From Trichoplax adhaerens (lineage: Eukaryota > Animalia > Placozoa), in contig NW_002060945.1 in NCBI RefSeq assembly GCF_000150275.1, positions 9,192,011 through 9,256,010 of the forward strand: 64,000 bases of DNA, written 5' to 3'. The notes below the pieces were generated by a model. The model saw nothing but the letters and a program-made list of their open reading frames with translations. It made no database searches and was not told the origin of the DNA. Below, piece after piece: positions 1 to 23,222 of this stretch (the first letter of the stretch is position 1; each line of letters opens with the position of its first letter). The translations under genes and the position numbers were made by a program.

Positions 1-416
1 CTGCCTAAAACCTAGATTATTGTCATTGCATAATAATATGGAGTAAATCAAAGTTAACAACATTTACAGGAAATGAAAAATATAATTTCCTTGAAAGTCC
101 ACGCAATCACCTAATACTAGGCTCGTACTTGGCTGTATTTTTAGTTCTGATTCCTTATGAATTGTAATAAAAAATTGTCGATCATCTATGGAACCTTCTA
201 TTTTAATACTAGATCGTTTTTCTATAGGAATTCCGTATGATAAACTAGATTGCCTAATCGATTATTGCTATCATATTTCATAATATTGAAGTATGAACTT
301 TTCATGGCTGAATGCTTATAAAATAATACTATTCATCTTGATTTTTTTCTAAAGATTTAACGGTAGGAGATTTGAAATTATAGCACTATAATCGAAGAAC
401 AATTAAGAAGTGAAAA

Positions 417-2896
417 ATGCCGACAGCTTTCACCATTGGAATTATCCAAATAACCTCAGGTGTGGTCAGCACCATTTTGGCAATATTGGGATGGATACTA
501 CTAGATGAAATTCGTCATGAATATTTGTTAATTTCCACTGCTTTACCTACAATAGCGGTAAGTTTAGCATTTTTCGTCTAATATAAGTACATTGAGTATT
601 TAGGATAGAGAGCATACATTAACACAATTTATTTTTTACCAATTCCAGTGTGCATATTGTATATTCTGTTCGATACTCTTTTCATAACGTGTAAAGAAGT
701 TTAATTAATTAATATTACTTTTTATAATTTCACTGTAATGTATCGAATAGTAACGCAACCTTGATAAAATTTTAATTCACTCACTGATATTGCTGTAGAT
801 GTTCTTATGTGGTATGTGCGCCATCGGTTTCGTACGAAAATCTTTGCATTCTCTGGTAAGCTAGATCATGAGCTACAATCATGATACAATTTATGATATT
901 CAAATTCCGTGTCAACAGTTTCGCGGATGTTAGCAATTTTAAGACTTTATAGAGTTTAAACCTTTCAAAAGTCATCCTAAAAGAATTATGTTAAAGCAAA
1001 TAGAATCAGGAATAGATAAGCATGCATATAGTGCGTGAATCAACAATGAACTGTATTAACAATTTTCATTTTAATTTCATCTAGTTAATTGGCATCATAT
1101 TTTTTGCAACGATTTGCGTGGCTAGCGAGATTTTCAGTATTGCGTCTCACTCTTACATCATTTACATATTTTCAAGAAGGAATTCCAAAGTTGTCGAGCT
1201 AGCAGTTGCAAGTATTTCGCTTATTCTATCGTGTATTTTTGGAGTATTTAATGGCTATGTCATTATCAAGTTTGCTCGCTATCTCGTTACCGTCAATGCC
1301 TCATTCGAAGGAGACGCTACACAAAGTAATAATCAACAATCTGGAATGGCTTCCACTACAACCCCAGTCGACGCACACTTTCTGTTCTTCGGATTATTCG
1401 GCCCAGGCTTGTTTCAGCTAGTATCTGGAGGTGTTACACTTGTACTTGGTATAGTTAGTCTAGTAGTTCTTCAAGGAGGTTTTGCACCAGCTACCTGCTA
1501 TCTCGGAAGTATTGTAAGTATTCCACAAGACTAAACTGTTTTACGTAACCTGCAATCTTATAAGTACTAACACAATGATCGCCTAATTATTTCTCATATA
1601 TTTGCTGGATCGGGAATCAGATGATTGCGAGCGGTACCATTACTCATTTAACTCAAAAGTTAAGAAATATTAAATCATTGGTAATATCCCAATAAGTGAT
1701 TCTTATTTTTGCCGAAGAGTGTAGCAAACAGTATCATACAACTAAAATCATATATTTCCTTCTCCTGGTTTAGACTACCTGGTCTTTGATCACTTCGAAA
1801 TGGGCATGTCTTTGGTCTTTTGCTCTAATAGTTTCATCCACACTTTATCTCGTTTTTAACATCATTGGAAGACAAATTTTTGCGGCCTATATTGCATTTT
1901 ATGTTTTAGTCATGATAGCTGGTTTGCTTAATTTGGTGGGTTCAGCAATCATTACCTTCAAAATGGCGAGTTTGGAGGAAGTTCCAGTTTTCAAATTGAC
2001 GCTATTTAATCGATTACGAATGCCAATAACATCACAAAATATCACTTTTGGCATTACTTTATGCTGCTTTGGCTTTCTCTTTATAATTGTTACATTTATA
2101 GAACCTTTTGTTGGAATTCCAACACACCTACTATATACTTTCGCTACTGGCTGCCAGGTAAATAAATAGATAATAGGGAAATGCACTTATTCTAGAAAAG
2201 TTGCTGCGTGAATAGAATTCTTATCATTAACAAATTTTATTCTCTTTAATGCAATTGTAGTTAATATTAGCTGGCCAATTAGGCAATAACTTGGCATTTA
2301 AATATTCGGAAGATTTGGTACGTAGATATTATTAACGGCTATTCAATGTACTATAATTAATTTCTATCCGATATTGTGCTAGCAAGCGCTTGCTTTAATT
2401 AACATTCTACATTTAACGGATATTAACTACTTAGGTGGCGTCTTATTTTATCATAAATTTCATGGCATCGGCGTTTATTACAACTTATCTTGGATTACTA
2501 ATTGCTGAATATACATCACTGCCATTTATCTTAACACAAAGACCAGCATCAATAGCTATGGCTATAGTAAATTTTGTCTTAATAGCGCCTGCCTTAATTA
2601 TCAGCTTATATGAAACTGTAATTACTGGATATCGTTCAGGAATTTGTATCTGTGGAGACAGGCCTGCAATCGCTATGGTAAAATGCAGTTAATTTAGAAT
2701 TATTTCGTATATTGGTCCATGTTTTATAATAATTATATTAATTCTATACTCCCTATCGTAGATTGAGAATACTTATGATGCTAGCGAACAGGCTCAAGAA
2801 ACTAATTCACCAATAGACAATCTTAACCATACTTTTGCTATACAAGATGATACGAAACATTCCATTCAAGACATATCTGGAGAAACACAGATATAA
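417..2896 (+). CDS. Triple CD20/MS4A-like domain membrane protein (about 12 TM, 501 aa), paralog 1
   Basis: Eight GT-AG exons, all introns phase 0: 417-557, 799-855, 1085-1513, 1621-1680, 1774-2157, 2261-2317, 2435-2677, 2762-2896 (TAA). An in-frame TGA lies two codons before ATG417. There are three repeats of a TM1 motif (IGIIQITSG / PGLFQLVSG / FGITLCCFG), each followed by a 57-60 nt mini-exon (MFLCGMCAIGFVRKSLHSL, MIASGTITHLTQKLRNIKSL, LILAGQLGNNLAFKYSEDL). These resemble the 19-aa YIISGSL-type exon of vertebrate MS4A genes. The family call is by recognition, not a database search. Confidence 0.85.
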
Positions 2897-5800
2897 TCAA
2901 CGATTAAATAGGGCGTAAATTGAAGTTAAAACTTGCTTGACAAAATTAGAGGTCAATTGATGCTAATAGTTGTTATCATAGGTTTATTCATTGTGCATAA
3001 GTAGATTAGTGTGTATAAAGAATCTACTTAACTTCCTTATTATAATCGTAACTGGTATGCAAAACTATATTGATAGTCAATCTAACGGTAATATTCGACT
3101 ATAAATACGTACAGGTAATCGAAAGGACAAATGCATTATCTACATATGCAAAGTTCGACGTAAGTTTATGTTTTAAATTGGTCAGCTACTACAAGAGTGC
3201 GGTTAGTAAGCACGTCTAAAGCATCGGGCTACAACGTTTCTCTTTTTACGCGTTATCGAAAATGATTGTGTAGTTACTTTGCATTACCGTATCGTAAAAG
3301 ACAATTGGTGTAAATCCTTTAAACTTATCAGGTATTAATTTATTGAGGGTCGTTTAATATAGGTACCTATGAATTTGTGAACATACTGCTATTTAATATT
3401 CGAAAGGTTTTAACAGTATTTCATAGGTAGTTGTGTCGTAACCCACTGTGCAGCAATATCTTTTCAACCATGTCATACTTGTACAATATGTTCATACCAT
3501 AAATTTCGCACTTAGATGATCATATTGGTTTACGAGTTGTACTTATTAACTTTTGTTGCCATCAAGTTTGTAATCATAACAGTAATACCGTTGTAGCCCG
3601 TAGTAAATTGTAATTACTCAGAATCATATTGCACCTCGACTTGGATTGTTAATTGACTTCTGCCAACACCTTTAATAAATACGATACAGTGTGATGTATC
3701 AGAGTTTCACTAATACAATTTTGTTGCATTCAATTACTTGGCTTTAATGAGTACTTTGAAGATTAACGAGGACGATGATATGTAAATGCTGTGTATATAA
3801 CATATATATTAATCATTTCGCAAATACTAGATAACTGTATCTCTCAATTTCTTATATTTTTGTTATACATGACAACCTCGTCTTGCATGGTCAACATTAA
3901 CTAGATTGGTAGTCTATATAGGACATCAACCTCACTTTGTTCATTAACTAGTAGTAGATTATACTAGCTATTATATTTATCTCGAGATGTATTTGTTTGA
4001 AACTTAGCAAGAGCAGTAATATAGAAATGCTGATAGCTATTAAAATTTGATATTTGCTACGATGTCAACCAACAAATGCAATCATGCCATAATATTTTAC
4101 TAAAAGAGTTCTATAGAGTAGTACTAGGATTAAATATTAAATATTCATTCATGATCGATGTAGAATTTCAGTCCTTATTCTATTCTAACAATTGATTATG
4201 AGTACAAACCGAACTTACTAGAAATTTACATTTGCTATGCATGCCATAAGAATTAATGCAAACGTTACCATCATTAGTAATTCATTTTACCAAAAATAAT
4301 ATGTATAACAATAATGGATAATTTATTAATCGACATATTTTAGCTGAAGCTTAAATTAAGATTTAACATTTGCTGCACTTGTTAAAAATCTCGAGATTTC
4401 ACCAGTGGTGTAATTTTTTGTAGCTTGTTTCAATTAGATAGATATTAACTGGGAATTTGCAATTCCATACGCGCTCACTGAGCAACAAATGAAATCATTA
4501 CTAAAGTACAATTAATATTAGATCCTTTATTTACAGATATTAATAAAGCAATCATGAATTAAAATTGATATGTCACATTATCATAAAGTATGCTAGTCAG
4601 GTTAAAATCGATTAAATTAACGTAGCAACTTATATAATATTTACTACTAAAATCTGACATAAGTCTTTATTGTTGATTACAAGCAAGACATCCATCATCG
4701 GAATGAAACATTATTGAAAAAGAAAACAAAGTGATGATTACAGTAATAGAGTATCTTTGCATTAACTATTTCGAAATAGGCTGATCAATTATAATTAAAT
4801 AAACAATAAAATAGTATTTAATATAAAATTGATGTAGATAGTCGAGTTGTAAAGTCTCTATTGCCAATCAATAACTGAAAAAATTTTGTCTATCATAAAC
4901 TAACCTCAATGAACGTCCTGTATTCCACTTTGAAAGGAATATCATCATGGTATTCATTTATAGCCACAATAATCGTAAACTGTGTAAGACAATACAAATT
5001 ACTTTCAATGATTGCAATTTAACCTACATTGTCTACCTAAGTTGAATAACAAGATGGTAAAATTAAAGCGTGTATAAGAAGTACAATATCAAGAGCGATC
5101 AATATTTAATTAATGCAGCTGGAATTTGGATTTGATATGCGATACTGAATGCCTATCATTGTTTAAATTGTATATAAAAGTATTTAGCTAAGAGAAATAC
5201 GGTACCTACTCGAATAAGGTGAAAGAAAAGATATCATCCTTGTTCAATATTGCCTATGATGGCTTTAGGCAGTTGCAAGTAATTGGTATATTTTAAATAA
5301 TTTAAGCTCTTATTTCAGTTAATCAGTATATTGCCGATAAAGGCGTGATTAAAAATAACCTTACTGGCTGTTCGATTAAAAACGGAGTTGGCAAGCATTT
5401 CAAAATAATTTTGACTGTAGTAAAGGTGTAATCAACGGTCGTTATTATTCACAATTAGGTTTAAGCCATGCTGAAGAATATTTTAAAATATTCTAGACAA
5501 TTTCTTTTTCAAAATATATCAGTATAGATTATACCGATTTGTTAACACACACGACAATTGCGGAGTATCAGCATCAGTCATGGTTGATATTCATAGAAAA
5601 GCATTAGAGATAAAATAATTCAGACTTTTTCTTAGTGTATACAAGCAACAAAAGGTGCGATCGAATAACAATCATAACCGATGATTCAAATGGAGCCAGG
5701 GGTAAAATCGTCGGAAAAGAAAGAATTCAGTAGTCTTTCTTAGAATTTCTATCATTCAACGAGCAGTACGATCAAAAACCGCAAAACCTCGGATTAGAAC

Positions 5801-7202
5801 TAGAGGTGGGAGCAATTAGAGAATCATTTTCGATTCTTAGCATGCATATGTTGCAGATGACAAAAAGGCTAAATTTAATTGCAGTTATTGCTAATAATGA
5901 AGTTACTGTGAGTTGAATATTAATTTTACTAGATTAATAAGGAACCCTCTAGCTACGAAGATTGAAAGAGAAATGAAAAAAGACGTGATAGCTCTAGCTG
6001 ATCGATAACTGACAAGTAATTGCAACTTCTGCTACTAGTTCCATTAGAGTATTACGATCAGCCTTGGGTCTTGACATTTTCAAGATTAGCAAGACAACAG
6101 CTAAGATAAGTGAAGATCAAGAATCTATATGATAAACTCTATTTACTTACCAATCATGCCTTATTTCTGCTACAATCATTGAAAATTCATTTCTACCTAT
6201 CTTATGCAAACATATAGTACCCTAAAAATAATTACTTTGGGCTACTGTATTTCACCTATCTTAACTCAAGGTCGATCCTTTTTAGCGAGCAATTATCGTG
6301 GACGTATACTATCGTATAGCCCCATGAAAGTGAGCGAAAAAAGAAAAGAATGTCAACATATTTCTTCCTAGAAGCAAATCAAAAGTGGTTGGGATGGAAA
6401 AATTTCTTTCTTACGAATACAATCCAATGATTTCAATGTAATGGTTACTATCCACTATTTTACTATTGAACTTTATATAGCTATAGCTTGGCTATTTTTT
6501 CCCTTTATCTACATTCAACCTGAATGTTATTGTTTTATTATTGATTAAATTATAATCTAATTGATAACAGTCTAGTTGAATACAATCATTGACAATTAAT
6601 TAATATTGTTGATAAGATAAAATAGTCTAGATATAAACGAAACAAGTCATCAACAAAATAACAGACAATGCCATTGTTTTAAACAAACTTCAACTTATCT
6701 CAATTGAGTAGTCGATGAAAAATTATTTAGTTACAGGCCTTGCGCGATTAAAGCTGATTCAATTCTACTGATTTAAGAGCTATTTTCCCCTTGATTTAAG
6801 ATTGGCTATCTTGAATAATCAATATCGGTATCTTTTTCCAACCCCAATGAAGTCATCGAAAGTAAGCTAGTAGCTTAGAACAGAAGAGCAAATACCAACA
6901 AACCTATTGAACTACCGTAGTCAAGAAAAAATAATAAAGATTAAGAATTTGGAAAGACTGCCATAAATAAAATTGACTATGGTCATTCGATTCAAGTTAT
7001 AGTGATTGGACTTCAGTATTTTTTAAAAGGTGAGTTAAAAATGAACTGAGCGATAGAAATAAGAGAGAGTAGGTAACTGAGATAGCCTAAGGATGTTTTT
7101 ATACGTAAATTTTATTCTATTTTGTCATTGGTAAAGTCTAATTTCTTAGATTACTCTAAAAGAAGAATATATTCAATCATTATCTCTTTATTAATTCTAT
7201 CT

Positions 7203-8020
7203 ACTCTTTGAAAGAGAAAAATTGATCAAGCAAATTATCATGAATAAAAGCAAAGTGGTAATATCACAACATAACACAAATTCTACTATAGTATGTTTAA
7301 ATTACAGTAAAAGCAATGGATCAATGATTGATCCTCTCTCTCATCAAATGATCAGAAGTCAGATTCTAATCGAGTTATACAGGAGAGTAAAATTCGAAAA
7401 CGACAATAATATAGATCGCTAATGACAATTACGACATGAAAGAGAAATCTAGATGCAGTACATTACAAGGAAAAATAAGATGGCAGTACACAACATACAA
7501 CTTCTATCTTAGTAGTTTTAAACTATAGGATCAACAATTGATAGATTCATTTATCTTTCATCTTTTCACTTCAATGATTACAAATTAGTCCAATCGATTG
7601 GTAAATAAATGTCAATATAGCGAAAGATAAGACTCAAATTTTATATCGTCATGTTAAACGATAGTCCAAGCACTTGTTCGGTTAATTCTTCTTCTATCTT
7701 CTTGCTTAAACGATTGGAAATTAGTTCCGTATTGATACATAAAAAATTAGTCTAAACTTAGTAAATGACACAACGTAACACAAAATCTACATTAAACGTT
7801 TCAAACTGTAATACAAGTAATTGATGAATTGATTCTTCTTTCATCTTCTCATTTAAATCATCGGAACTAAGATACGTTCGATTTAAATAAGTATAAATTT
7901 AAAAATTGACAACATTAATGGTAGTCTGCATTTACTTTTGGAAAGAAAAAAACCGATCAAGAAAGTTATAATGAATAATAGTAAGGTGACAATATCACAA
8001 CATCACGTTAATTCTGCAGA
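7203..8020. repeat. Diverged ~85 bp direct duplication (7203-7290 and 7931-8018)
   Basis: tttgaaagagaaaaattgatcaagcaaattatcatgaataaaagcaaagtggtaatatcacaacat aligns with tttggaaagaaaaaaaccgatcaagaaagttataatgaataatagtaaggtgacaatatcacaacat. Confidence 0.6.
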
Positions 8021-10464
8021 TGCTATTTCAAATTACGACAAGAGGAGTTGATTTATTGAATTCTTCCTTGACCTTCTCACCTATGTCATATGTAAAGACC
8101 GAAAACAGTGTTTGTAAACGATCTTTCATTTTTAATAAAATAGAACATCCCTGATCATTATATATATATAACATAACATATACATATTGTTTATAGTCTC
8201 CTGTCTTCATTGAATGCCATTTAGATCACAAATACCTTAATAAGGGCTTAATGATACAACATTAAAAGATGGCAAGATCATTAACAGCTCTAGATTTCAC
8301 TCACTATGCAAGCAAATATTTCTTCCCTATTTGTGAAGTAGGAACAACTACGATACTTTTCGTCTTTTCACACTCTATTTTGATCATCAATGGAAAAGAA
8401 ATAAAGTAGATGAAGATATTTATAGCCAAGAAGTAATTAATAAATCGAGTAATTACATTTTGGTTTGATGGATTTCCACTAACTGGCGCTCTTTAAAAAT
8501 ACTCCAGTATAGCTACAGCATAGAAATGACGTACATTTTATCATCTTTTTCGTGTTCACTTTTGCTTTAAGAATGAAGAATTAGAATTAGCTAGAGATAG
8601 TGATGAAATGATGCTAAGGCTAGAAGATAGGTTACTCTCTATTACATAATATCAATCCAGACCGATTTATCTTTTTCATATTATATCCAATCACTATTAA
8701 AGTATTGGCGTATAACGAAGCAGACTCATCTATTTCAATCAGACATGTATTAAACTAGATTTTTGCCTATAGTACAAAATCATCTTTAAACACGAATATT
8801 TCCATTTTTGATTATAACTTTTTATACTCAGCAGAAGAGGAAATAATGAAATCGAATTACGAGAGCCATTATAGTATCACTTTATGCCCTTAAATGTAGT
8901 AGCATTCAAGCTATTAAAACTATCATTAGCTCTACTCGTTTTATGATGGTATAGTGATCAACGATATTTCATAATTTTCGACCTTATTTATGGTAAATAC
9001 AGCTAGCTTTTTCGGTCGTATAAATTAACTCTAGTGCCTCCGCACTTATTCATCATTAATTAATAGCTATAAAAGCGAATTACTCATATTATTGATGGCT
9101 TTATTACTCCAGTTGAGATACTGGAAGACTTTTACTAAATGTAGCAAACTAACCGCAGTCGTATTAATTTCTTGAGCGCCTAACTTTCAATTTACTCAGT
9201 TAAAACATGATTTTTGACCCTTACTTACCCAATCCTTTAGCAGTGGTATTAAGATGGTGATTTAGAATCAAATAGGTTTCTAAAATAATAGTAAAATGAC
9301 GGATGAGCAAGATGTTAGAATTAAATTTTTATCTTAATCTAGACACGGATAATAGTAAGATTCTATCAGAAATTGACTTTTCAATCCTTTTAAGATAAGA
9401 TGGATAATTACCCGCATTATTCTGTTTACTGACGATCTTTCGAATAAATTTTAGAACAAGTTAGAATAATCATTACCGCAAACATTCACGATTGAATTTT
9501 AATGAATACTATTTTATAGTCAGAAAGCTATGTGATAATCATAATCTAAACGTGATTCCCTCATCACTTCTCATCATAATGACTGATTTATGATCGACTC
9601 ATGTGAAGTAATTGTGGAATAAATCCAAATAGAAATATTATCTAAATATGCACTCGATTTAAAAATAATTATCGATGATGATTATTGCTAGTTAACCATA
9701 CCCTGGATAATACGAATTAATCATAGAGAAAGAGGTATAGATAATCGAATAATTATGATCAATCACGATCAATAAGTATAGATGATATAAAGTTATGATG
9801 GAGATGAAAATCTTTAATCTATAAGTTGCTTTTGTAAACGATTGTTCGTTATTCATTTGAAAGGTTAGAATTGGTATCAGCATGAGATAATCATCTTATA
9901 GAATTTCTAGAAATCTGCATGATCTTATGGTACGCGTGTTATTGCCTCTACATATGCTCGATTTTTCTACTCATGATTAAATTCAGTTTATCCTTAACCC
10001 TTAAAATACGTACCCGTAAAATATTAGCTTTAAAAGTTAGTATTTGCTGGTAAGCAATAGCAGAAATAACTCCAGAAAGCACAATTAGAATATCACTATC
10101 TTGATACCGGTATACCTACATTCGATTTCCTTGATCATAATGAAATTGAATTCCACTTTGGCTTAATAATATACATACATAGAAACCAATGCCTGTTAAA
10201 TACCAGCATTATTAGATTCTTTGGATAATTAGTTGAAGAAATGGGTTTAAAAAATATTGCATTTGCGAAATTTGCCTTTTAAAGTCTTATTTTAAATATA
10301 TGTTATGATATCCTGTATCCGATTACACACCCTAGACGATCCGCGGTTATATAAATCATTTTCCTTTAAATGATAATAGAGTCACAGATTTACATTTTGA
10401 ATTAAAAAGATTGGAAATGATTTCCAAGTAGAATAGAGTAAATTAACGCAAATCGTCAAGGGTA

Positions 10465-10760
10465 ACTATAAAACTAGACTATAAGCCAAAATGGTTAGAA
10501 TGAAGCGAAACTAAATGCGGTAATCAAGAATGATCATAAAATTAGACTATAAGCTAAAACTGCTACCAATGACCTACAATAGAACAAACCAAGTAAATCA
10601 TCAAAAATATTAAAAAAACTAGGCTATTGATCAAAAGAATTAGGATGATACATATATAAGCGGAATAGCATGAGGCTAAATAAGTTATCAAAAATAGCAA
10701 TAAAATCTGAATATACCTAGGCTAAAATGGTTACCATGAAATACAAGCAGAATATTGCAA
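10465..10760. repeat. Degenerate tandem repeat, unit roughly 70-100 bp
   Basis: The motif actagactataagccaaaatggttagaatga recurs as attagactataagctaaaactgctaccaatga, actaggctattgatcaaaagaattaggatga and cctaggctaaaatggttaccatga. Confidence 0.5.
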
Positions 10761-13215
10761 GTATAGTAAATCATCATTAAGCTCATCTGCAGAGCTTATA
10801 ATCTCAAATCTTACATACGATGATTAATCGAGTGTCAGTATTATTCATATCGAGTAAATATGATGTGAAAAATCTGCGGTAGCATAAATTATTTCTATCA
10901 AAATAAATCTAGAACTGCTCGTGTAAAATCCGATTGCAAGAGAAATAGCTGGAATGATAGTGAGTAGAACATAGTAAGGCATATTATCACTATTACTATA
11001 AATAATTCAACCATTGGCTATAGTTTAGCTTATTAATTAAGATTATACTTTATAGCTTTTATAATGAAGATTGTAATCGTTTAAGTATTAAAAGAGGGGA
11101 GTTTCTGACGATACTACTATAAGATATTCATCTTTAAAATACGAAAAAAGGTGGACGATAAAAGATAGGTAGTATTTCTTAGAATCTTTGCTAAAGCATC
11201 GGTATTTCCATACCGACTTAAATAACAGACTGTATATCACTTTTTACTTTAGATTGTTTAATTTAATGCTGATAAATAGTTTTGCCATGGTAATAGTAAA
11301 ACTGATGCATACACACACTAAAACATTTCCCGATTTACAACAATTTAAAAGTAGCAAGATTAACTGATATAATGGATGATGAGACTCCAATGACTTTTAC
11401 TCTATTTTAGCGACTTTATTTGTAAGATATTTTACAAATTATCGTCAATTTACGGATGTCACGCAGCCTTTATTCATTTTCTACATAAGTTTTATTCTAC
11501 AAGCACAGGAATTATGAGAGCATGGATTGGTTCATTGTCCTTTTCTGAAAATAAAATTGTTAGCTGCTACGTTAGTAAGGTTTAAAGTTGAATAAACCAC
11601 CATCAGATTGATCAGGAGTGATTATTTAAACTTAATTTGTTTTGTATGGTATAACTTTATTCATCTGCCCGAAAAACTCTTAATTAAAGCTATTTTGCTA
11701 TCCTCATTTATGCCGTAGTAATTACGCGGAAAAACTACAAAGATGGAGGAATGACTGATTATTTGTATATTATATATATATACATTATTAGCACTTCAAG
11801 TAACCCATCACACCCAAAATTCTCAAAAATATGCTCTGACGAGGTAAAATTAAGCAGAGATTTTATACTCACTATCAGAAAATGATTGATCATCTTTATA
11901 TATTACTATCATTCTTATTAATCTACTCTATCAATTCGTTATAAACACACTCCCAAAATGTAAATTAAACGAGTGTAGATGGATCTGCATACCATTTTTC
12001 TATTTCATTAGCACTCTTTTAACGTATTAAATTAAATTTCTTCAAGTATCTTCTTACGATTCATTGGTCATATCCATTTTTAATACTCATATGAAACTGT
12101 CAAGTTTGATCTGTTCTGATGACGCCAAATAAACACTCATCTGGTTAAAAGCCAAATTCATCACATTTTTACAGATAAAGGCTAAATAAATCTATAAATC
12201 AAGAACTTTCTACTGAAATAATCAATTAAAGCTAAAAAGAATAAAATATTTACTATTAAAGTTATGATAACTAAGTTATATAATATCTAGATTGCCCATT
12301 TCCGTATGGCAGCTCCAGAAATAATGAACAGCATCAGGAAGGAAATGCTATATACGCTTATTAAATTAATTAAATGTCTAGAAAGATCACTATTTTCTTT
12401 TCATTTCCTACTATACAATCCTCGATTTGATCAGGTAATATTTTGACTGGATTTTTCCATCATCAACTTTCTTTGCATTGATTCGATTATTTCCATCAGA
12501 ATTAGCCTAGATGAATATGCTATTTGTTCTAGCCTGGAACAAGATAAATTTGAAAATGGTGGATACGCATTGTTTATAAAATTAAATTAATGCAATTCTA
12601 TTCTATCACTATTTTCCTCTATAAAGAAAATATCTCAAACATGCCTACCATTATGTACCCGCATATCCTTCCTTTTATCCTGTTTATTCCCACCAATTTC
12701 AAAGAATAACGATAACTTACAGTATTCTACCTACTTAATCCTGTATAATAATTATAGACAACGGATAATAATTAATCAATATAAGCTTTGTCGCCTTTTT
12801 ACTATCTCTCATTAAATGTTTAAACTTTTCAATTATTTCCAATAATTCGATTTATGTCATTTGTATCTAAAACTTCTTTATAACTAGACGAGAATCCTCC
12901 TTGTCCAGTATCAACTAACAATAGCAAATTTACAAGCATTTTCCATCACAGGACTGAGAATATGCTGTCTTATTTTATCACCATTACTTTAACTTTTATT
13001 TCAATATCAGATTCTTAATGACTGATAAGAATTACTTTTTAATGCGGTATCTTTGACAACAGGAGAGTTTATAAATGCTTTCATTTTTATTGCTGAAGAT
13101 ATGTAAAATGGACTATTCGATCCCATTATTTTTATTTCGATCTTTATCAACTTCAAATTCTTGATAGTCAATTAGTGATAACCAAATTATATATTATGGC
13201 ATATTTACCGAGATT

Positions 13216-13560
13216 ATCAATCCAAGCCAAGATATAATTAAACAGAGAAATACCTTGATTGATATTTTATACCGATACTTTTCATTGAGTTATTCGCTAC
13301 AATCTTTTTAATATGTTAATCGTTTAATACTACATCATTCTGTATCGCTAATTGTCCGAATAGCTTATAATACATTAGAATTGCAGAAATCTATGATCCA
13401 AGCCAAACCTTACAATATAATAGTTAAATGTATCGATAAATATTTTATATCAATACTTTTCGTCTTGCTATTAGTTATAATATCTTAATTTATCTATCAT
13501 TTAATATTTCGTATAATTATACTTGACTTATTACTTAGATCGTTGAATTATTCAGTATGC
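13216..13560. repeat. Diverged two-copy tandem duplication, period ~177 bp, upstream of paralog 2
   Basis: atccaagccaag...tattttataccgatactttt near 13220 and atccaagccaaa...tattttatatcaatactttt near 13396. Confidence 0.55.
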
Positions 13561-13727
13561 TCGTATACATTATAATCTTTTTTCCATTCCTATAGTCCCA
13601 AAAGATCATCGACACAAACACTTCAGCTAAAAATAATTGTATGATCTGCTAAACAACTATTGTTATCAGATATTCCTAAATTATTGCAAGAAAGGAAAAA
13701 CAACCACCATCTAGAGTAAATCTAAAG

Positions 13728-16700
13728 ATGATTGATAAAAACTTACTTCTAGGAGTAGCTCATTTGATCCTAGTAGCAGGTAATGCAGCCATTGCGGTGG
13801 CCGGTTGGATTATCTTAAAAGAGTATAAAAGTGAATACCTTTATGTTGGTATGTTACTTCCATCGATTGGGGTAAGTCAAGTTACACCTTAATAAATCTA
13901 TTATTAATTAGCGCTTAGCTACCAAGATAGCAATTTTATTTGGTATTTACTCTGCTGAATATTAAAAGCGATATTATTTGACCATATTATTACTTTGACT
14001 GATGTCCTTAGTTATAAATTTCGCTGCACATTATGGAGAATTAAAATAATCTATAGGGATATTTAATCATATTTTTACTACACTGATAATCATCAATGAA
14101 TGCGATATAGATTTCCATCATCTTGACGATGATAATCTATTTTGATATTGCTATAGTTAACAGGGGCTGGATTCTCTACTTTTGCCTACCGAATCAAGCC
14201 ACAATGTTTTACGGTAAGCCGATTTTATAATTTCGCATCGGATCAACTGGAATATATGATCCAAACGTACCCGATGTCAATCAAATTTATTTAATAGACT
14301 AACTTTTAACCAAAACTTCTGTCTGACTTATAATTATTTTTTCCATTTATCTTTATTCTAGTTAATTGGTATTATAATTTCATCCGTGCTCTCTGTTATT
14401 GGGGAAATCTATACCATTACTGCTTTCTTTTTCGCATTGGGCCTATATCATTACCATGATAGTGGGCAAATGCTGGCAGTTACTCTAATTACCATTCTGC
14501 TGTCATTGCAAATATTAATCTTCTCAATTTATAACATTGTACGATGTTATCGCCATATGAAAGCTTTATACGCTTGCCGAGAACGCTCTCAAGAACACCA
14601 CAATACTGTTAATGAAAGTGATGAGACGTCGTCGCTTTATACAGATAAATTTTGCTATTCTCCCTCTTCTATTACTTCTTCCTTTAATACTATCGTACAT
14701 AATCATCGAATTATGGGTATTGCACAAATTATTACTGGCACTATTTCATTTGTACTTGGATTAGTATGCTTGTTTGTACTTACAGATGCATTTACTTTGG
14801 CCAATAGCTATTTGGGTGCAATGGTAAGTAGCGTGCATAGCCTAATTATAATGGAGAGCGTTATTGATGTTAATTGATGGTTACTAGTTCGATTCATTCT
14901 TTAGAGGCTATGCATTGGATAAGAGTTTTGCAGTTAGCAATCATGTAATTCTGAAATAGATTTAGAATGCCTAATTTATTGCATAAACACTCTATTTGTA
15001 GGTGATTACATCGGGTGCAGTAACATTATTATCCCATCGATATCCAAAATTATCATCCACGGTAAGTTTAGTATTAGCTATTTACTCGTGCAAAGTACAA
15101 TATGAAACCATTAAAAAACTACTTCAAAATTTAGCAATCTCGTGCATGATTGAATCGAATCAGTATTGCCCCTATGTGTGCATACTTCAAGCAATTGCTA
15201 ATACGTAGAATACGCGTAGATGAAAAACAAGTAGGCATAAGATAAATCTAATTATGTATAACATCAATTCTGAGAACGTTTATTTAAGAAGACTTTAATC
15301 TTTAATGAAATAAATTGATATAGAATGATGCAGAAATGTAATAGAGTAAATTATTTCTGTATATTTCATACAGAAAAAGATTCTAAATTAAATTTATTGG
15401 ATATTTACTCTGCCCATCCTGTATATCTCCTAAAGAAAATGATTACTTTTAATGATGAGAAGATTTGCTCCAATTCCTACAATTTATATAGTCATCACAA
15501 ATGAATAGTTGTAACAAGAATCGAAACTCCTTCGAGCCCACTGTTAGGCTTGTCTTTCTCGATGTTTGCCCATAGCACAGCTCAGAGATACTGACAACCT
15601 CCCATTTTAGTAGGCCACTAAGTATCTACCCTAAAATAAGTTATGAACATAAATTTCATTGAAAATCGGCTAGTGTTTGGTATAGACATATATAAACAAT
15701 CGGTACTTGTAGAAATAACCTTATGAAAGATGGTAATTATCTATACAAATATGTATGAAGTATTAGATGATGATGTTATTATCGAATACAAAATTATTTT
15801 ATCTATTGAAAATAAGATAAAAATTGGTTTATGAAAAGTTATTTCGTGATAACAGTATAAGAATACTGTAAACGATATTTTAAAAATAAATTCGGATGAT
15901 AGATTGAACTGATTACATTTTTCATCTAATCATTTTTAGTCTCTTTGGTCACTCATTTTAACAAGAGCATCATCATTATGGTCCATTTCAACAACCTTTT
16001 CATCTTTACTTTATTACCTATCTACTGCTTTACGCAGGGAAACTCATTTAACTTATACAGTTTTATTTATCATTTCATTATGGGGAGCTGTTGGTAACTT
16101 TATCATCTCTATTTGTATCACTGTTTTAAAAGTTAAGCGCCAACGGTCGCCATTCTTTACATTTATCATCTTTAATCAATTTGGTTCGACAACAACTACT
16201 GGCCAATTAATGATTAGAGCATGTTTCGCTTTTCTTGGATTATTGACTCTAATTGTGGGTGTTGTTGAATCATTTGTTGGCACTTCCTCTCACATTTTCA
16301 TTGCTCTTGCAGTTGGATGCCAAGTAAGTACTCTTGTCAACGTCAGTGCATAAATACGGTAAATGAACTAGTCACTAATCATAGTTACTAGCGGATTGCG
16401 TTATCTCCAACTAGAATCAAGTTACAGAATCTACTAATTGCTTAAATCGAACTTTTTCATAGTTTAGCATAGCAAAGTGTATTGATAATCAATCCAATTT
16501 CAAATTAAATTAAAATACATCATTGCATCATGTTGAGTGATAAATTGTTATTTTATTAGGTTAATACTTTTACTTATCAGTATTACTTCAAAGCTAACTA
16601 CATTAATTAGTAATAATTATAAATTAGTGAATTTTAGTCTATCTCTTCAAGTAAAGTAGCATATAGAAATAATATAGTACTAACTCAATTTTTCAAATTG

Positions 16701-17534
16701 GTAATTAGTTGATTCTAACTGGTCATTTTGGCAATAATCTTGTCATCAAAAATTTAGAAAATGAGGTAAAACATAATTCATCTGGTTTAAAATACATATT
16801 CTATACAATCAATCGATGTTGTAACATTTCACTTGCTTCATTATTTGTTTTACATACTTAATTTTAGGCTATTGCTTATTTTATCTTGTTAACAACATCG
16901 CTGGTCTTTATCGTCGGCTATATTATATTAACCATTGCGGAATTTACTACCTTATTGAGTTTGCAACCACAATTGGTCAACACTGGAGTAGTCGCCATGT
17001 TTTGTGTTAATGAAATTATATTATTGCCAGTGCTTATTATTTGCATATATGAAGCAATAACTTGTGGTCATCAAGTCGGATTATGCTCTAGGGATAAGTT
17101 TTCTGCGGTAAGAATAATTACATCCATTTTCGCGTATAAAATTTCCAAGCAAAATTGAGTTATTCACTGCAAGTATAGAAATATTCATACAGTATCGTAT
17201 ATCATTGCGCTGGAAACGATAAAATAAAATGATAAAGTTAGTTATTAAAAAAGCAATACACCGCCTTAAATTATTATAGGCTGAAAAAGGCAAAATTTAC
17301 AACTAAAGTTGATAATACCCAATTTATATTGATCTATGATCTCGTTTATCGCGATATACACCAAAATGTAAACGGTAAAAATCATTTCTACTGAAGATCA
17401 TTTAGTAATTTTGGCTAAAATTTTCAAATTTCTTCTTCTAGAATTATCATTTGCCGAAAGAACAACCTTGTCAACGAAGTATGGTCGCCATGCATAATGA
17501 TATTAATTTGGAAATAGTGGAGGCCAAGGTCTAA
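13728..17534 (+). CDS. Triple CD20/MS4A-like domain membrane protein (about 12 TM, 498 aa), paralog 2
   Basis: Eight exons, all introns phase 0: 13728-13871, 14157-14213, 14362-14823, 15002-15061, 15940-16323, 16709-16765, 16868-17107, 17442-17534 (TAA). Exon sizes 57/60/384/57 are identical to paralog 1. Shared motifs include LIGII, YLG(S/A), WSLI, E.FVG...H, GCQ|LIL.G..GNNL and IYEAITCG/LYETVITG. Confidence 0.85.
15513..15740. mobile_element. Possible short non-autonomous (HINE/DINE-1-like) element in intron 4 of paralog 2
   Basis: It begins AACAAG followed by a palindrome TCGAA-actcc-TTCGA, contains AAATTTCATTGAAAATCGG, and ends in an imperfect inverted repeat ATAACC...GGTAATTAT. It is locally GC-richer. 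This intron is 878 bp versus 93 bp in paralog 1. Confidence 0.3.
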
Positions 17535-18389: not shown

Positions 18390-20050
18390 TAGTAGGGGGA
18401 AAAATTGATCCTATTCAATAAATTGTTCAATTAATATCTTCGTAGTAAGACAATCTATGTTGACCAAAATGGGTGCTTGGGATAGAATTGCATGTCTTTT
18501 ATCCCTACGGCACATGTTAAATAGTTGTATCACTTGAGTATTGAATCGCTGTATCAATCTAACTATTGCAGACACAATTGTTATGAAAAGTGTCCAGAGC
18601 TGGATCAATCTACGCCATCACAGCTTCTTGTCCTATCACAGAATTGTGCCAAGATTGCCTGGAAGGGATTTATTAAGCAAGATTTGAGTGCTTCCCCCAA
18701 AGAGCCATTACCTTAACCCTAACATATGACATACTGTCCCATATAGTAGTATCATTGATGATACCAGCCGCAATCTTTCAATATTTTAATAGGTTGAATT
18801 GACTATACCATAGTAAATGGTATAGTTGAGTTTACTGCATTTTTTGTCCATATCTTTAAAGTACCATGGACTACAAGAAGAAGGCCTATATTCTGCTAAT
18901 GGTCTGTAAAAGTACACACCACTACTGTTATGAGGTATCATGATGATAGTAGCACCCTGATTATTGTATAGGACGTATGATAAGTTCATTACCATGATGC
19001 AAAGTGGAAATTGCTGCTTGGTCTAAGATATTCATCGTTACCCTTCCATGATCAAGACCATGGCCTAATGCTATGGCTGATTTGATCTCGATGGCTACTT
19101 ACAGCATCGACTGTAGTGTACAGGGCGTATGGAAAGTCATTTGCGATTGGTGCAGTACTGTCGTTGATAATGTACTTTTGGGTGTCTCCTCTTGCTCTCC
19201 CTGTAGTCGCTTTATTTCTCTCCACTTCATACCCTATTTTTCGTATATTATTATTATTTCTGAGCTACTTTATGCCATTACTGTCTACCATACAGTATAA
19301 GCAATCCATCTCTCGACAGGACCCATCGATCAGTGGAAGACTAGCCAAGAATGTGCTTTCCATTTTTGAAAAAGTAACCTTCTATTCATGCTATCCTCCT
19401 TGCTACTGCTGTTTACTGTAAGACTAGCATAGACTAAGAAATACTCGTATAATATCATCTAGTCCATGTCGATGGTCAGAGTAGTTTCAGTGATGGCATT
19501 GCCCTAGTTCATGGATGCCATGATAGAAGAAATAGCTTTTAATTGTATTGCCTGCATGATACTGTGCATTGAAATGGTTTGACGTTCCTTCCATTTGTCG
19601 AGTTCAAGTTCATCTTTCCTGTACAAGGTCATGGCTCAAGCGATTGCACTGTTTCGACACAGTGTAAAGTGTACACGAGAGCCCTTGATGCAATGCGGTA
19701 TAGGCAAAGTTGGCGCATTTCCTCTTCCTTTTTCACCTTGAACAACTCAATGAATATCCTCATCATTTCTATTTTTCTATAATGTACTGCACTGAGTCTG
19801 CATGAATTCATGGCGGAAAAGGTGGCTAGCTCATTTTGCAATTGATGAAGAATTTCTTCTTGCAACATCAGCACAGGCGTTGACCATGCAACAACGCTGT
19901 GACAGTAGTGCCTGGAATGACACTACCACAACTACGTCATCCAACACGCCTGAACATTGTACAAGTCAGCCAGTCGTAGCCCGCTACTGTACTGGATTTC
20001 TATCAAGTCAACCTGTCGTAGAGTAAACACACCGTGGGTGTGATTGGTCA
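18390..20050. other. GC-richer unassigned segment with fragmented ORFs (decayed element or non-coding transcript?)
   Basis: There is a compositional shift from the AT-rich flank and several 60-100 aa ORFs on both strands interrupted by stops. I recognise no domain and could build no consistent spliced model. Confidence 0.2.
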
Positions 20051-20079
20051 GCAGTGACCATTGAACTTCACTCTGAACG

Positions 20080-20990
20080 CACAGTACTGTAGACTGTAGA
20101 CTGTAGACTGTACAGTACTGTACTGGAGTGGTGTACTGTACTGTACGTACCATCCGTACTCTCCGTATCGGTTTTGTTGGGCAAGACTAACAGCAAGACT
20201 GGTCAACACCACAGCGAACGACCCCTTGTTAGTTGTTAGTACTGTACAGTATACTGTAGTAGGAACGTACAGTGTAGAGTCGATGTTATTGCACTGTACT
20301 GTACAGTGTATTGTACTGTACTGTACAGTACAGTACAGTACTGTATTGCAGGTCGTAGTGTACTGTACACTGTAGAGTATGTACTGTAGTACTGTACGCA
20401 GGTTTTGTTGGGCAAGACTGACAGCAAGACTGGTCAGCACCACAGGGAACGACCCCTTGTCTGTACGCAGCATAGTACGAAAGTAGAGGACAGCGTCACG
20501 ACGTCCGTCTCTCCTTGACTAATAGACGGTGTCCCCGGGTGAGTCGATGTTATTAAACTGTACAGTGTACACTGTACAGTAGACTTGTAGTGTACTGTAC
20601 TGTACTATACTGTACTGTACTGTACTGTACAGTATTGCAGGTCGTAGTGTAGTGTACTGTACACTGTAGAGTATGCACTGTAGCACTGCACACAGGTTTT
20701 GTTGGGCAAGACTGACAGCAAGACTGGTCAACACCACAGCGAACGACCCCTTGCCAGTACGAACCATCGTAGGAACGTAGAGGACAGCATCACGACGTCC
20801 GTCTCTCCTTGACTGATAAACGGTGTCCCCGTGTGAGTCGATGGTATTGCACTGTAGACTGGTAGTGTATTGCAAGTGGCGTACAATACAATGTACTGTG
20901 CACGGTAGAGTATGTACTGTAACACAGCGCACGGTCCAGTACTGTACCATACCGTTACTGGGGACAGCGTTGTACTATACTGTAGTCAGC
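20080..20990. repeat. Composite tandem array: 3 copies of a ~59 bp GC-rich core separated by (ACTGT/ACAGT)n microsatellite
   Basis: The core GGTTTTGTTGGGCAAGACT(G/A)ACAGCAAGACTGGTCA(A/G)CACCACAG(C/G)GAACGACCCCTTG occurs at ~20170, 20401 and 20695. The spacers consist of TACTG/TACAG pentamers. Confidence 0.9.
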
Positions 20991-23222
20991 CAACACGACC
21001 GTGCGTCGTTCTTCTCAAACGTCATGTCACAGTCAACCACCAACGACTGGGTCTGAGTACTGGACGACCTGACCCGAGGTACGCGTCGAGTGGACGAATA
21101 TTAGCAGAGATTTTCATTCTTCACTTTGCTCTTGCATGCTGACCTTATTGTGCAAAGAAAAAGAGGAAAAAGGAGGAAAAAATTGATACAACTGCTTGTT
21201 ATTTGGATGGATTAGCAAAGAGTAGAGATTGGTGAGGTCTAATTGATTGTATCTTGAGCCATTTTTGCGCTCATTCAAGAGATCAATCTCATTTTAAGCT
21301 TCATTACCAGCGGACACGCTGCTAGCGGTAGACGCCTGTCAACTGGGATTTTTTTCATTGACTACCCCCCCATTTCGACTGGCGTCATCATTTTGACCAC
21401 TAAGTGGATTCTACCAGCGCCATTGCACTAAATTAGCTTGTAAGTCAAGTTGAAATAAACTGTCTTCGCTGTAATAACCAATATCAAATGGATACCATAA
21501 AATCATTGAGTTAGGAAATGAAAGTCTTTGAAACGTCGATGAAAATCAAGACGTTATTACAGTAGATATTGGATACAGTTGTTCTTCCTTGACGCTTGTC
21601 GACTCGATAACCACGATTGTGCCTGGCCTACAATCTCACTCCATGATGGATACGAACCCAAAAAAAGACTCTCCTACAAGCAGTGATGAGATCAATGAGA
21701 GAAAAAGTTCAATCATGATACTTTTATCTAGATAAACTAATATGTCCAACTTTTAGCATAGGTCGATTGATGACTTTGAAGTTGAATTCTTCTTCTAGTT
21801 ACCAATTTCTTTTTTTTTCGCATTGGCCTCCTTGGACGTACGTACTGTAATTGTATTCAACACTTTGATCAGGACAATCCATTCTTCACTTTTTCTATAG
21901 ATTCATCTTGGCGCTCCAACCTTGACTTCAAATCGATCCAACCTTGCATTGCGTTAATTTGATTGACTCATTCTGTCTTAACCTTATCCGTTTACCTTGG
22001 TTCTATTCTCGTCGAGCCTTGATTTCAATGTGGGTGATATGAGGGATTTTGAGGAATTGGTAAGTTGGCACCCATTCAACCTCCCCAAAATTGTTGCTAT
22101 TTCGATACCGATAATATCATTCGATCGTCCACCAAGGATACTACTTGTGTAATGCTCAATCATAGAGTAGAGAGTACATACAGCTACTAATTTCGCCACA
22201 AGAGCAATCAATACATGCCTTACATCAGTCAACAAAGTGTATTTTTGGGGGCTCTTATTTTCCCCTGCTACAAAATCAAATTGAGCTCTTGCAACGATAG
22301 CAGAAACGTACAGTACTATACAGTATAGAGTCTCCTACCAATACCCCCGTAGATCCGTAATCGATGCCATCGTCAATGGCTCAATGACTTGGGCCGTACG
22401 TAGGCGAGGGGCATCATTGCTTTCTTATGCGATCACATAGCAATATACTCTATACATATTCTACTGGACACTTAACGGATGTCTACTCTAATCGAAACGA
22501 CACCTATTTTACTGTCTACTCTTTTATTACATTACGATTGTTACATTCAAATTTTTGAATATAATCTTGATCGATCAAACTACCATAGACGAGTATTCGT
22601 CATAGGATAAAGTCTATTTTACCTATAGCTTTTGTCAAAATGATACCCACAATTATAGGTGCAGTGTACACTAATACATCAAATCCAATCATATGCTCAA
22701 ATCAATTGTTCTATTCTCAATCTATTTGCTAAATTCTTTACTTTAATGTGTACGTTTATCTTTATAGACAGCATACTTAAAAAAAAAATTGTCCATTTTA
22801 CAAGTCGTGTGTATCGGTCTTGCATGACAAAAATCTTGACAAATGATAATCCTAACAGTTTATCTACTTTATCCTAATCAGTCTCTAAGCTCATCGATAT
22901 CCATGAATGTTGCCATTTTTTATCGTAAAACGATTAAAAATTGAAATTGTACCATATTATCTTTATAGCATGTGCTTTTTTCAATATTCGTGCAGTAATT
23001 AGGCTATATTCCAACTCACAAAGTGGTGTAGTAGCCAGTCGTAGTTACACAATTATACTGTACTGTACAATAACCAACATACGATATGAATGCTGATTTG
23101 GACAACTAGCCTTAAATGTGAATAATTTTCATTCTAGTTTTCTTCTAATGTTGTGGTACTATTGAAATCTTCTATCGTTTAAACTCGAATTCTAAATAGA
23201 TGAGTAATTCTTTTCTATCTAG

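Follow-up and report, generated by a model that had tools for sequence, protein, structure and literature searches.

Gene 1 of a Trichoplax adhaerens locus probably encodes three CD20-like four-helix modules in one chain

The window analysed here was a stretch of 64,000 nucleotides (nt) of the Trichoplax adhaerens genome (G000:C1412:9192011-9256010), and the searches covered the whole assembly of 105.6 Mb (1,414 contigs, about 31% G+C). Near the left end of the window, a gene that we called gene 1 occupied positions 417-2896 of the forward strand (Table 1). It consisted of eight exons of 141, 57, 429, 60, 384, 57, 243 and 135 nt, and translation of the joined exons gave a frame that was open over 501 codons. 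All seven introns were in phase 0 and had GT..AG ends, and every exon length was a multiple of three. An in-frame TGA located at 411-413, just upstream, fixed the ATG at 417 as the start codon. A previous sequence-only reading had described this locus as a single-chain CD20/MS4A protein made by internal triplication. The spliced frame with three hydrophobic modules and three phase-0 mini-exons, on which that reading was built, was confirmed with the same coordinates.

The hydropathy profile of the gene 1 product contained three hydrophobic blocks with four putative transmembrane (TM) segments in each, the second of which (TM2) was weakly hydrophobic in every block. The mini-exons of 57, 60 and 57 nt each interrupted this second segment of their own block at an equivalent position. 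Both junctions between modules were internal to exons, namely to exon 3 and exon 5, and the outer loops were very short (about 3-15 amino acids, aa). A helix picker based on hydropathy alone overlooked the weak TM2 helices; its assignment of inner and outer sides was unreliable and was not used.

Transcript contigs from four runs of four studies (X4, X5, X6 and X11) were placed on window positions 101-3300. In X5, X6 and X11, a single contig of about 2.13 kb carried all seven exon joints and spanned positions 355 to 3220. In X4, which was recorded as RNA, the seven joints were split over at least two contigs (260 letters at 355-556 and 1,503 letters at 1084-3090), and this run also held thin intron-retaining pieces, as pre-mRNA would give. 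The joints 557/799 and 855/1085 were present in all four runs. Since the genome assembly had only intron-containing copies of gene 1, the spliced form was derived from RNA. About 245 letters preceded position 355 in the long contigs, and the last 30 of them mapped to G000:C1412:9188711-9188740, which was 3.3 kb to the left of the window. Thus, an intron was present in the 5' untranslated region (UTR) and gene 1 began outside the window.

Gene 1 was one gene that gave one spliced mRNA and one chain, and the seven joints seen in RNA bore out the single chain that had been proposed from the sequence. A different origin of the gene model would be three adjacent four-helix genes misread as one, a reading helped by the fact that single-module genes of this family did occur in tandem elsewhere in the genome. 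We rejected it and left it next to no probability, because individual RNA contigs crossed every joint in three runs (at least two contigs were needed in X4), the junctions between modules were intra-exonic within one stop-free open frame, and the fused exons were conserved in all the other triple-module genes that are described below.

Three additional observations were made on these contigs and on the assembly. At the 3' end, the long contigs of X5, X6 and X11 departed from the genome at position 3220 and resumed at 3373, skipping about 152 nt that had neither GT-AG nor CT-AC ends. Possible causes of this jump were an unusual joint in the 3' UTR, a polymorphic indel or an assembly path. A separate transcript contig of 266 letters started at about 3191 and ran beyond 3300. 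Its depth in comparison with the gene 1 contig was 122.9 against 87.2 in X5, 22 against 54.1 in X6 and 58.8 against 84.2 in X11, and it may represent a neighbouring or overlapping transcript. Finally, the region of gene 1 was present a second time on a small scaffold (G000:C1226:1-2966 and beyond, L006), on which exon 5 and the TM1 segments were identical. The variant of the 5' UTR on L006 had two mismatches and was equal to the allele seen in the RNA runs X6 and X11, and L006 was probably an allelic scaffold rather than a second locus.

A paralog, gene 2, was found 11 kb downstream of gene 1 when the exons were compared with the window by tblastn. It was collinear with gene 1 exon by exon at 28-56% identity and followed the same eight-exon plan (144/57/462/60/384/57/240/93 nt). 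Gene 3, a more divergent triple gene on scaffold C1403, was reached through a whole-genome search with a profile of eleven TM1 segments, and its exons measured 153/57/432/57/381/57/255 nt, all in phase 0. When 1.84 billion proteins were searched by HMMER with exon 3 and a profile search was added, only the proteins P0001 and P0003 were matched. Their contigs, L004 from a Logan run and L008 from an ENA metagenome scaffold, bore orthologs of gene 1 with the same exon boundaries, canonical splice sites and 56-100% identity per exon. The source samples of L004 and L008 were taken to be other placozoans.

The triple plan was therefore conserved in gene 1, gene 2, gene 3, L008 and L004, and since the same eight-exon geometry recurred in the other four, the geometry of gene 1 was far beyond chance. 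Modules of different paralogs paired by position. Namely, those of gene 1 matched those of gene 2 with E from 1e-12 to 1e-26, and the first module of gene 3 matched the first module of gene 1 with E 5.6e-5. The triple architecture was therefore older than the split into the three paralogs. Exon 6 was the best-conserved piece of gene 1 (identity of 100% to L008, 95% to L004 and 56% to gene 2), and exon 1 was 77% identical between gene 1 and L008. The last residues were E-T-Q-I in L004 as well as in gene 1, and E-T-H-V in L008.

Single-module genes with four putative TM segments were also present elsewhere in the same genome. We built at least eight of them outward from genome matches of PF04103, the CD20-like family of Pfam, and from matches of the TM1-segment profile: genes A and B on G000:C1409, gene C on C1408 and genes D1-D5 on C1395. 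The PF04103 family includes MS4A, sarcospan and TMEM176. All eight genes had a TM1 exon, a phase-0 mini-exon of 57-66 nt that started with Y-x-L/I-x-G, and a TM3-TM4 exon. They were like the modules of the triple genes in their four putative helices, the TM1 motif G-x-x-Q/H-x-x-x-G, the glycine at position 5 of the mini-exon, the basic loop between TM2 and TM3, the cysteine cluster after TM4 and both intron positions. This cluster was C-D-C-G and C-D-C-C in genes A and B and G-I-C-C in gene 3. In contrast to the triple genes, each of them had one module with its own start and stop, mostly a longer loop between TM1 and TM2, and about 20% identity to the modules. The D genes had Q/P-rich ends and long TM1-TM2 loops. 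In gene C, the intron between the mini-exon and the last exon was filled by a tandem repeat of about 100-150 nt, with peptide strings that recurred in all three frames.

Table 1. Positions of gene 1 and of the related genes. Numbers without a prefix are window positions; UTR, untranslated region; TM, transmembrane segment.
Feature	Position	Strand	Content
Gene 1, 5' UTR, 3' part	355-416	+	acceptor of the 5' UTR intron (about 3.6 kb) at 355; long RNA contigs fit from 355
Gene 1, exon 1, 47 aa	417-557	+	start codon, module 1 TM1 (G-I-I-Q-I-T-S-G), outer loop, first part of TM2
Gene 1, exon 2, 57-nt phase-0 mini-exon	799-855	+	remainder of module 1 TM2 (Gly at position 5), basic inner loop
Gene 1, exon 3, 143 aa	1085-1513	+	module 1 TM3-TM4, linker of about 45 aa, module 2 TM1 and start of TM2
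Gene 1, exon 4, 60-nt phase-0 mini-exon	1621-1680	+	module 2 TM2 (M-I-A-S-G), basic loop
Gene 1, exon 5, 128 aa	1774-2157	+	module 2 TM3-TM4, linker of about 27 aa, module 3 TM1 and start of TM2
Gene 1, exon 6, 57-nt phase-0 mini-exon	2261-2317	+	module 3 TM2 (L-I-L-A-G-Q-L-G-N-N-L)
Gene 1, exon 7, 81 aa	2435-2677	+	module 3 TM3-TM4, then juxtamembrane Cys cluster G-I-C-I-C-G
Gene 1, exon 8 with stop	2762-2896	+	acidic C-terminal tail, last residues E-T-Q-I
Gene 1, 3' UTR	2897-3220	+	extent to which transcript contigs track the genome
Gene 2	13728-13871, 14157-14213, 14362-14823, 15002-15061, 15940-16323, 16709-16765, 16868-17107, 17442-17534	+	from tblastn; splice sites and frames read
Gene 3	G000:C1403, locus L018, plus-strand coordinates about 4941-7970 of L018	-	three 57-nt mini-exons, fused TM4-linker-TM1 exons; read as far as G-I-C-C-S-E
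Genes A and B, tandem pair	G000:C1409:5090000-5097000 (L010, L024)		
Gene C	G000:C1408 (L011)	-	
Genes D1-D5, tandem cluster	G000:C1395:1020001-1080000 (L019-L023)		

The link of the single genes to the CD20-like family ran through gene A. The PF04103 profile matched three exons in the whole genome, none of which was within the window. The first exon of gene A scored 21.7 bits over profile positions 2-40, and P0004, a database protein that joined the mini-exon and the last exon of gene A, scored 23.2 bits over positions 42-93. These pieces were collinear on the profile and added up to 44.9 bits, a simple sum that is an approximation, in comparison with the Pfam gathering score of 27.9 bits. 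Thus, gene A was counted as a member of the family on this approximate sum. The TM1 exons of genes B and C also matched PF04103. The first exons of D1-D5 had no CD20 match in Pfam, and these genes were tied to A, B and C by hhalign only (98.8%).

To relate the triple genes to these single genes, modules were cut from joined exons and compared as profiles with hhalign, 14 modules in total; Pfam scans were made on single exons. The modules matched A, B and C with a probability of 94.4% (E 8.5e-8) and 130 columns in register, and the reversed control gave 0.4%. The match to D1-D5 reached 94.3%, and the match to all eight single genes reached 96.5% (E 8.6e-10) over 119 columns with the four helices in register. 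Reversed-template controls gave at most 1.2% throughout. When the four helix blocks were permuted, the native order was top-scoring among the 24 permutations, and separate comparisons of partial alignments gave 57% (E 1e-4) for the TM1 parts and 65.5% (E 5.8e-5) for the TM3-TM4 parts. In a MAFFT alignment that used sequence only and included the 14 modules and the 8 single genes, intron 1 occupied one common column in 21 of the 22 units and intron 2 was within one column in all 22. Accordingly, phase-0 introns flanked a short TM2 exon in the triple genes as they did in the PF04103-positive genes of this genome. A language-model search of the Atlas with gene 2 exon 3 also placed CD20 clusters at the top (0.88, 176 shared features), with TMEM196 and MLC1 next.

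Several results pointed in the opposite direction. The TM1 block alone gave E of about 1e-4 in the permutation control, so that part of the profile signal between modules and single genes came from this one motif. None of the exons of genes 1-3 and their orthologs reached the CD20 profile in Pfam; the best direct scores were those of L004 exon 7 (14.1 bits, E 0.049) and of one of the eleven TM1 segments (E 0.018). Profile searches of PDB sequences retrieved neither CD20 nor any other relative, only weak matches to ND1, and the Atlas search with gene 1 exon 5 returned nothing. Among the 1.84 billion proteins, exon 3 retrieved only the ortholog on the contig of another sample. Within the triple genes, the modules resembled each other weakly (hhalign probability 4-11%, E 0.003-0.011). 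Moreover, composition can inflate profile comparisons of helical membrane proteins. Only fragments of placozoan type were returned by word-index searches, for which the TM1 exon of gene C and two profiles (of exon 3, and of exon c of genes A and B) were used; neither a full-length protein nor a vertebrate CD20 was among them.

An alternative reading of these points was a protein with 12 TM helices and another fold, in which the CD20 likeness would come from helix composition and convergence. Apart from the missing Pfam and PDB matches, this reading was favoured by the caution that short MS4A-like similarity in invertebrate proteins was also seen in unrelated membrane proteins (Zuccolo 2010, PMC2826416). 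On the other hand, two introns were common in position and phase to the modules and the PF04103-positive genes across the 22 units, and the profile match ran in register over four helices and was lost on reversed templates. Additionally, Pfam scans of single exons of genes 1, 2 and 3 and of the orthologs found no transporter family at E up to 10, which spoke against the major facilitator or other transporter fold that the sequence-only reading had named as an example of a refutation. We therefore considered a different fold rather improbable. Since the shared intron position and phase were independent of helix composition, they were the chief reason why the homology of the modules to the CD20-like single genes was accepted. 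Thus, the 501-aa product probably consisted of three diverged CD20-like four-helix modules of the PF04103 superfamily arranged head to tail, with 12 predicted TM helices. The CD20/MS4A identity suggested earlier stood as far as it went through the PF04103-positive single genes, by profile comparison and introns; as a direct match of gene 1 exons to Pfam it was absent or very weak. Gene 1 was filed under the wider CD20-like family and not under MS4A proper, and orthology to any vertebrate MS4A gene was not expected.

MLC1 (modulator of volume-regulated anion channel, VRAC, current 1) deserved separate consideration, because its clusters appeared at ranks 4 and 11 of the Atlas search and one cluster was annotated with both Membrane_MLC1 and CD20. 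Like the predicted products of the triple genes, MLC1 passes the membrane more than four times, and it is reported as oligomeric (PMC8633789). It has 8 helices, whereas 12 are predicted for the triple genes, and the likeness came from Atlas features alone with scores of 0.85-0.87, which were below 0.9 and served as leads only. The modules, in contrast, matched four-helix genes of the same genome and shared their introns. A relative of MLC1 that was extended to 12 helices, instead of a chain of MS4A-type units, was consequently a quite unlikely explanation, less likely than a different fold. This alternative may be compatible with three CD20-like modules if MLC1 itself was built from CD20-like halves.

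As to the origin of the triple gene, each module retained the exon plan of the single-module genes, namely a TM1 exon, a TM2 mini-exon and a TM3-TM4 exon. The fused TM4-linker-TM1 exons would be the expected trace of a tandem segmental duplication, and they would be equally expected from unequal crossing-over between tandem single genes with breaks after TM4 and before TM1. A blastp comparison among the three modules of gene 1 found nothing significant; between genes, the third module of gene 3 matched the first module of gene 1 with E 1e-3. No module was closer to its sister modules than to the single-module profile. Since the modules were only weakly alike and none was closer to its sisters than to the single genes, internal triplication was not separable from fusion of tandem genes. 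The claim of triplication in situ, as it was made from the sequence, was therefore not upheld.

In a plausible arrangement, the four helices of each module would place both of its ends in the cytosol and give all three modules the same orientation. The distribution of lysine and arginine in the gene 1 translation, with 13 residues in loops and linkers presumed to be on the inner side and 6 in the outer loops, would fit a cytosolic side for the ends, the linkers and the TM2-TM3 loops, similar to CD20. The chain might then be a natural concatemer, in which three different CD20-like bundles would be held to a 1:1:1 assembly. It could be anchored through palmitoylated juxtamembrane cysteines and through its C-terminal end, which has the S/T-x-hydrophobic form of a PDZ ligand. 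By analogy with CD20, FceRI-beta, sarcospan and MLC1, we would tentatively assign it a possible role as a membrane organiser or as a regulatory subunit of a surface complex, which seemed more likely than a pore of its own.

In the pore-forming version, which went back to the pseudo-trimeric receptor or channel suggested by the sequence-only reading, the three modules would ring a central path as a pseudo-trimer, and the chain would conduct Ca2+ or other cations or serve as a chemoreceptor. Several MS4A and TMEM176 proteins are linked to cation entry, and on the other side the solved structures of CD20 are compact dimers without an evident pore. The best-conserved element of gene 1, the TM2 of module 3, had an unusually polar face (H, T, C, Q, Q, N and N around L-I-L-A-G-Q-L-G-N-N-L), which would suit a conducting path, but it was not retained in gene 3. 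The trimeric state reported for MLC1 (PMC8633789) would also suit such a path, and the short outer loops would be poor for binding an extracellular ligand. Thus, a pore was unlikely in our view. The same low probability was given to a broader idea: an ancient placozoan concatemer family with at least three paralogs would hard-wire 1:1:1 assembly, the ancestral CD20-like unit would be a trimer around a shared axis, in line with the report on MLC1 and unlike the dimer of CD20, and a path for conduction or for a ligand would be lined by the conserved polar TM2 of module 3.

The assembly of CD20-like and MS4A proteins is still debated, with dimers, tetramers and hetero-oligomers proposed and with the proteins regarded either as pores or as regulators only. 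Three diverged units joined in one chain would fix a single stoichiometry, and one construct would then serve both structural work and electrophysiology. The expression and conservation of gene 1 argued that this fixed stoichiometry was functional. In unit size, predicted number of helices and TM1/TM2 motifs, the modules were like CD20 (MS4A1), FceRI-beta (MS4A2), sarcospan and TMEM176A/B, with the link made through gene A. The triple genes differed from CD20 in that they had no long extracellular loop and no immunoreceptor tyrosine-based activation motif (ITAM) in the tails, and in that their own exons remained below the Pfam profile.

Chains with several MS4A-type units have been described before. 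In chicken, opossum and platypus, long MS4A genes that comprise 2 or 6 units in tandem were reported and were read as support for an oligomeric function (Zuccolo 2010, PMC2826416), so the opinion that the architecture of gene 1 had not been described did not hold in general. Similar to gene 1, each of these genes would have a predicted polypeptide with more than one four-helix unit of the MS4A type. They were, however, gene predictions from few vertebrates only, with 2 or 6 mutually similar units, whereas the placozoan genes had three strongly diverged units, were conserved in paralogs and in other samples and gave spliced transcripts; no orthology between the two groups was implied. We found no paper on placozoan CD20-like genes or on a 57-bp exon in MS4A genes, and nothing useful that linked MLC1 with MS4A or CD20. 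Since both the domain family and the multi-unit architecture were already known in general, the significance of gene 1 was moderate.

The same study recognised clear MS4A genes in jawed vertebrates only and concluded that invertebrates lacked MS4A-like genes (PMC2826416). The placozoan genes with their shared introns argued against this absence as far as the wider CD20-like family was concerned. Thus, one of the animal lineages that branched off earliest already had the CD20-like family, including its two intron positions.

Two other parts of the window were noted. Between gene 1 and gene 2 (2900-13700), no open frame of at least 75 aa was present, and G+C and GC skew rose around 5000-6000, where a gene with short exons may be located. 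At 20048-21142, both strands carried long open frames with repeated peptide blocks, such as KGSFAVVLTSLAVSLAQQN, and with Y-S-T-V-Q runs, and this segment resembled a repeated DNA element more than a gene.

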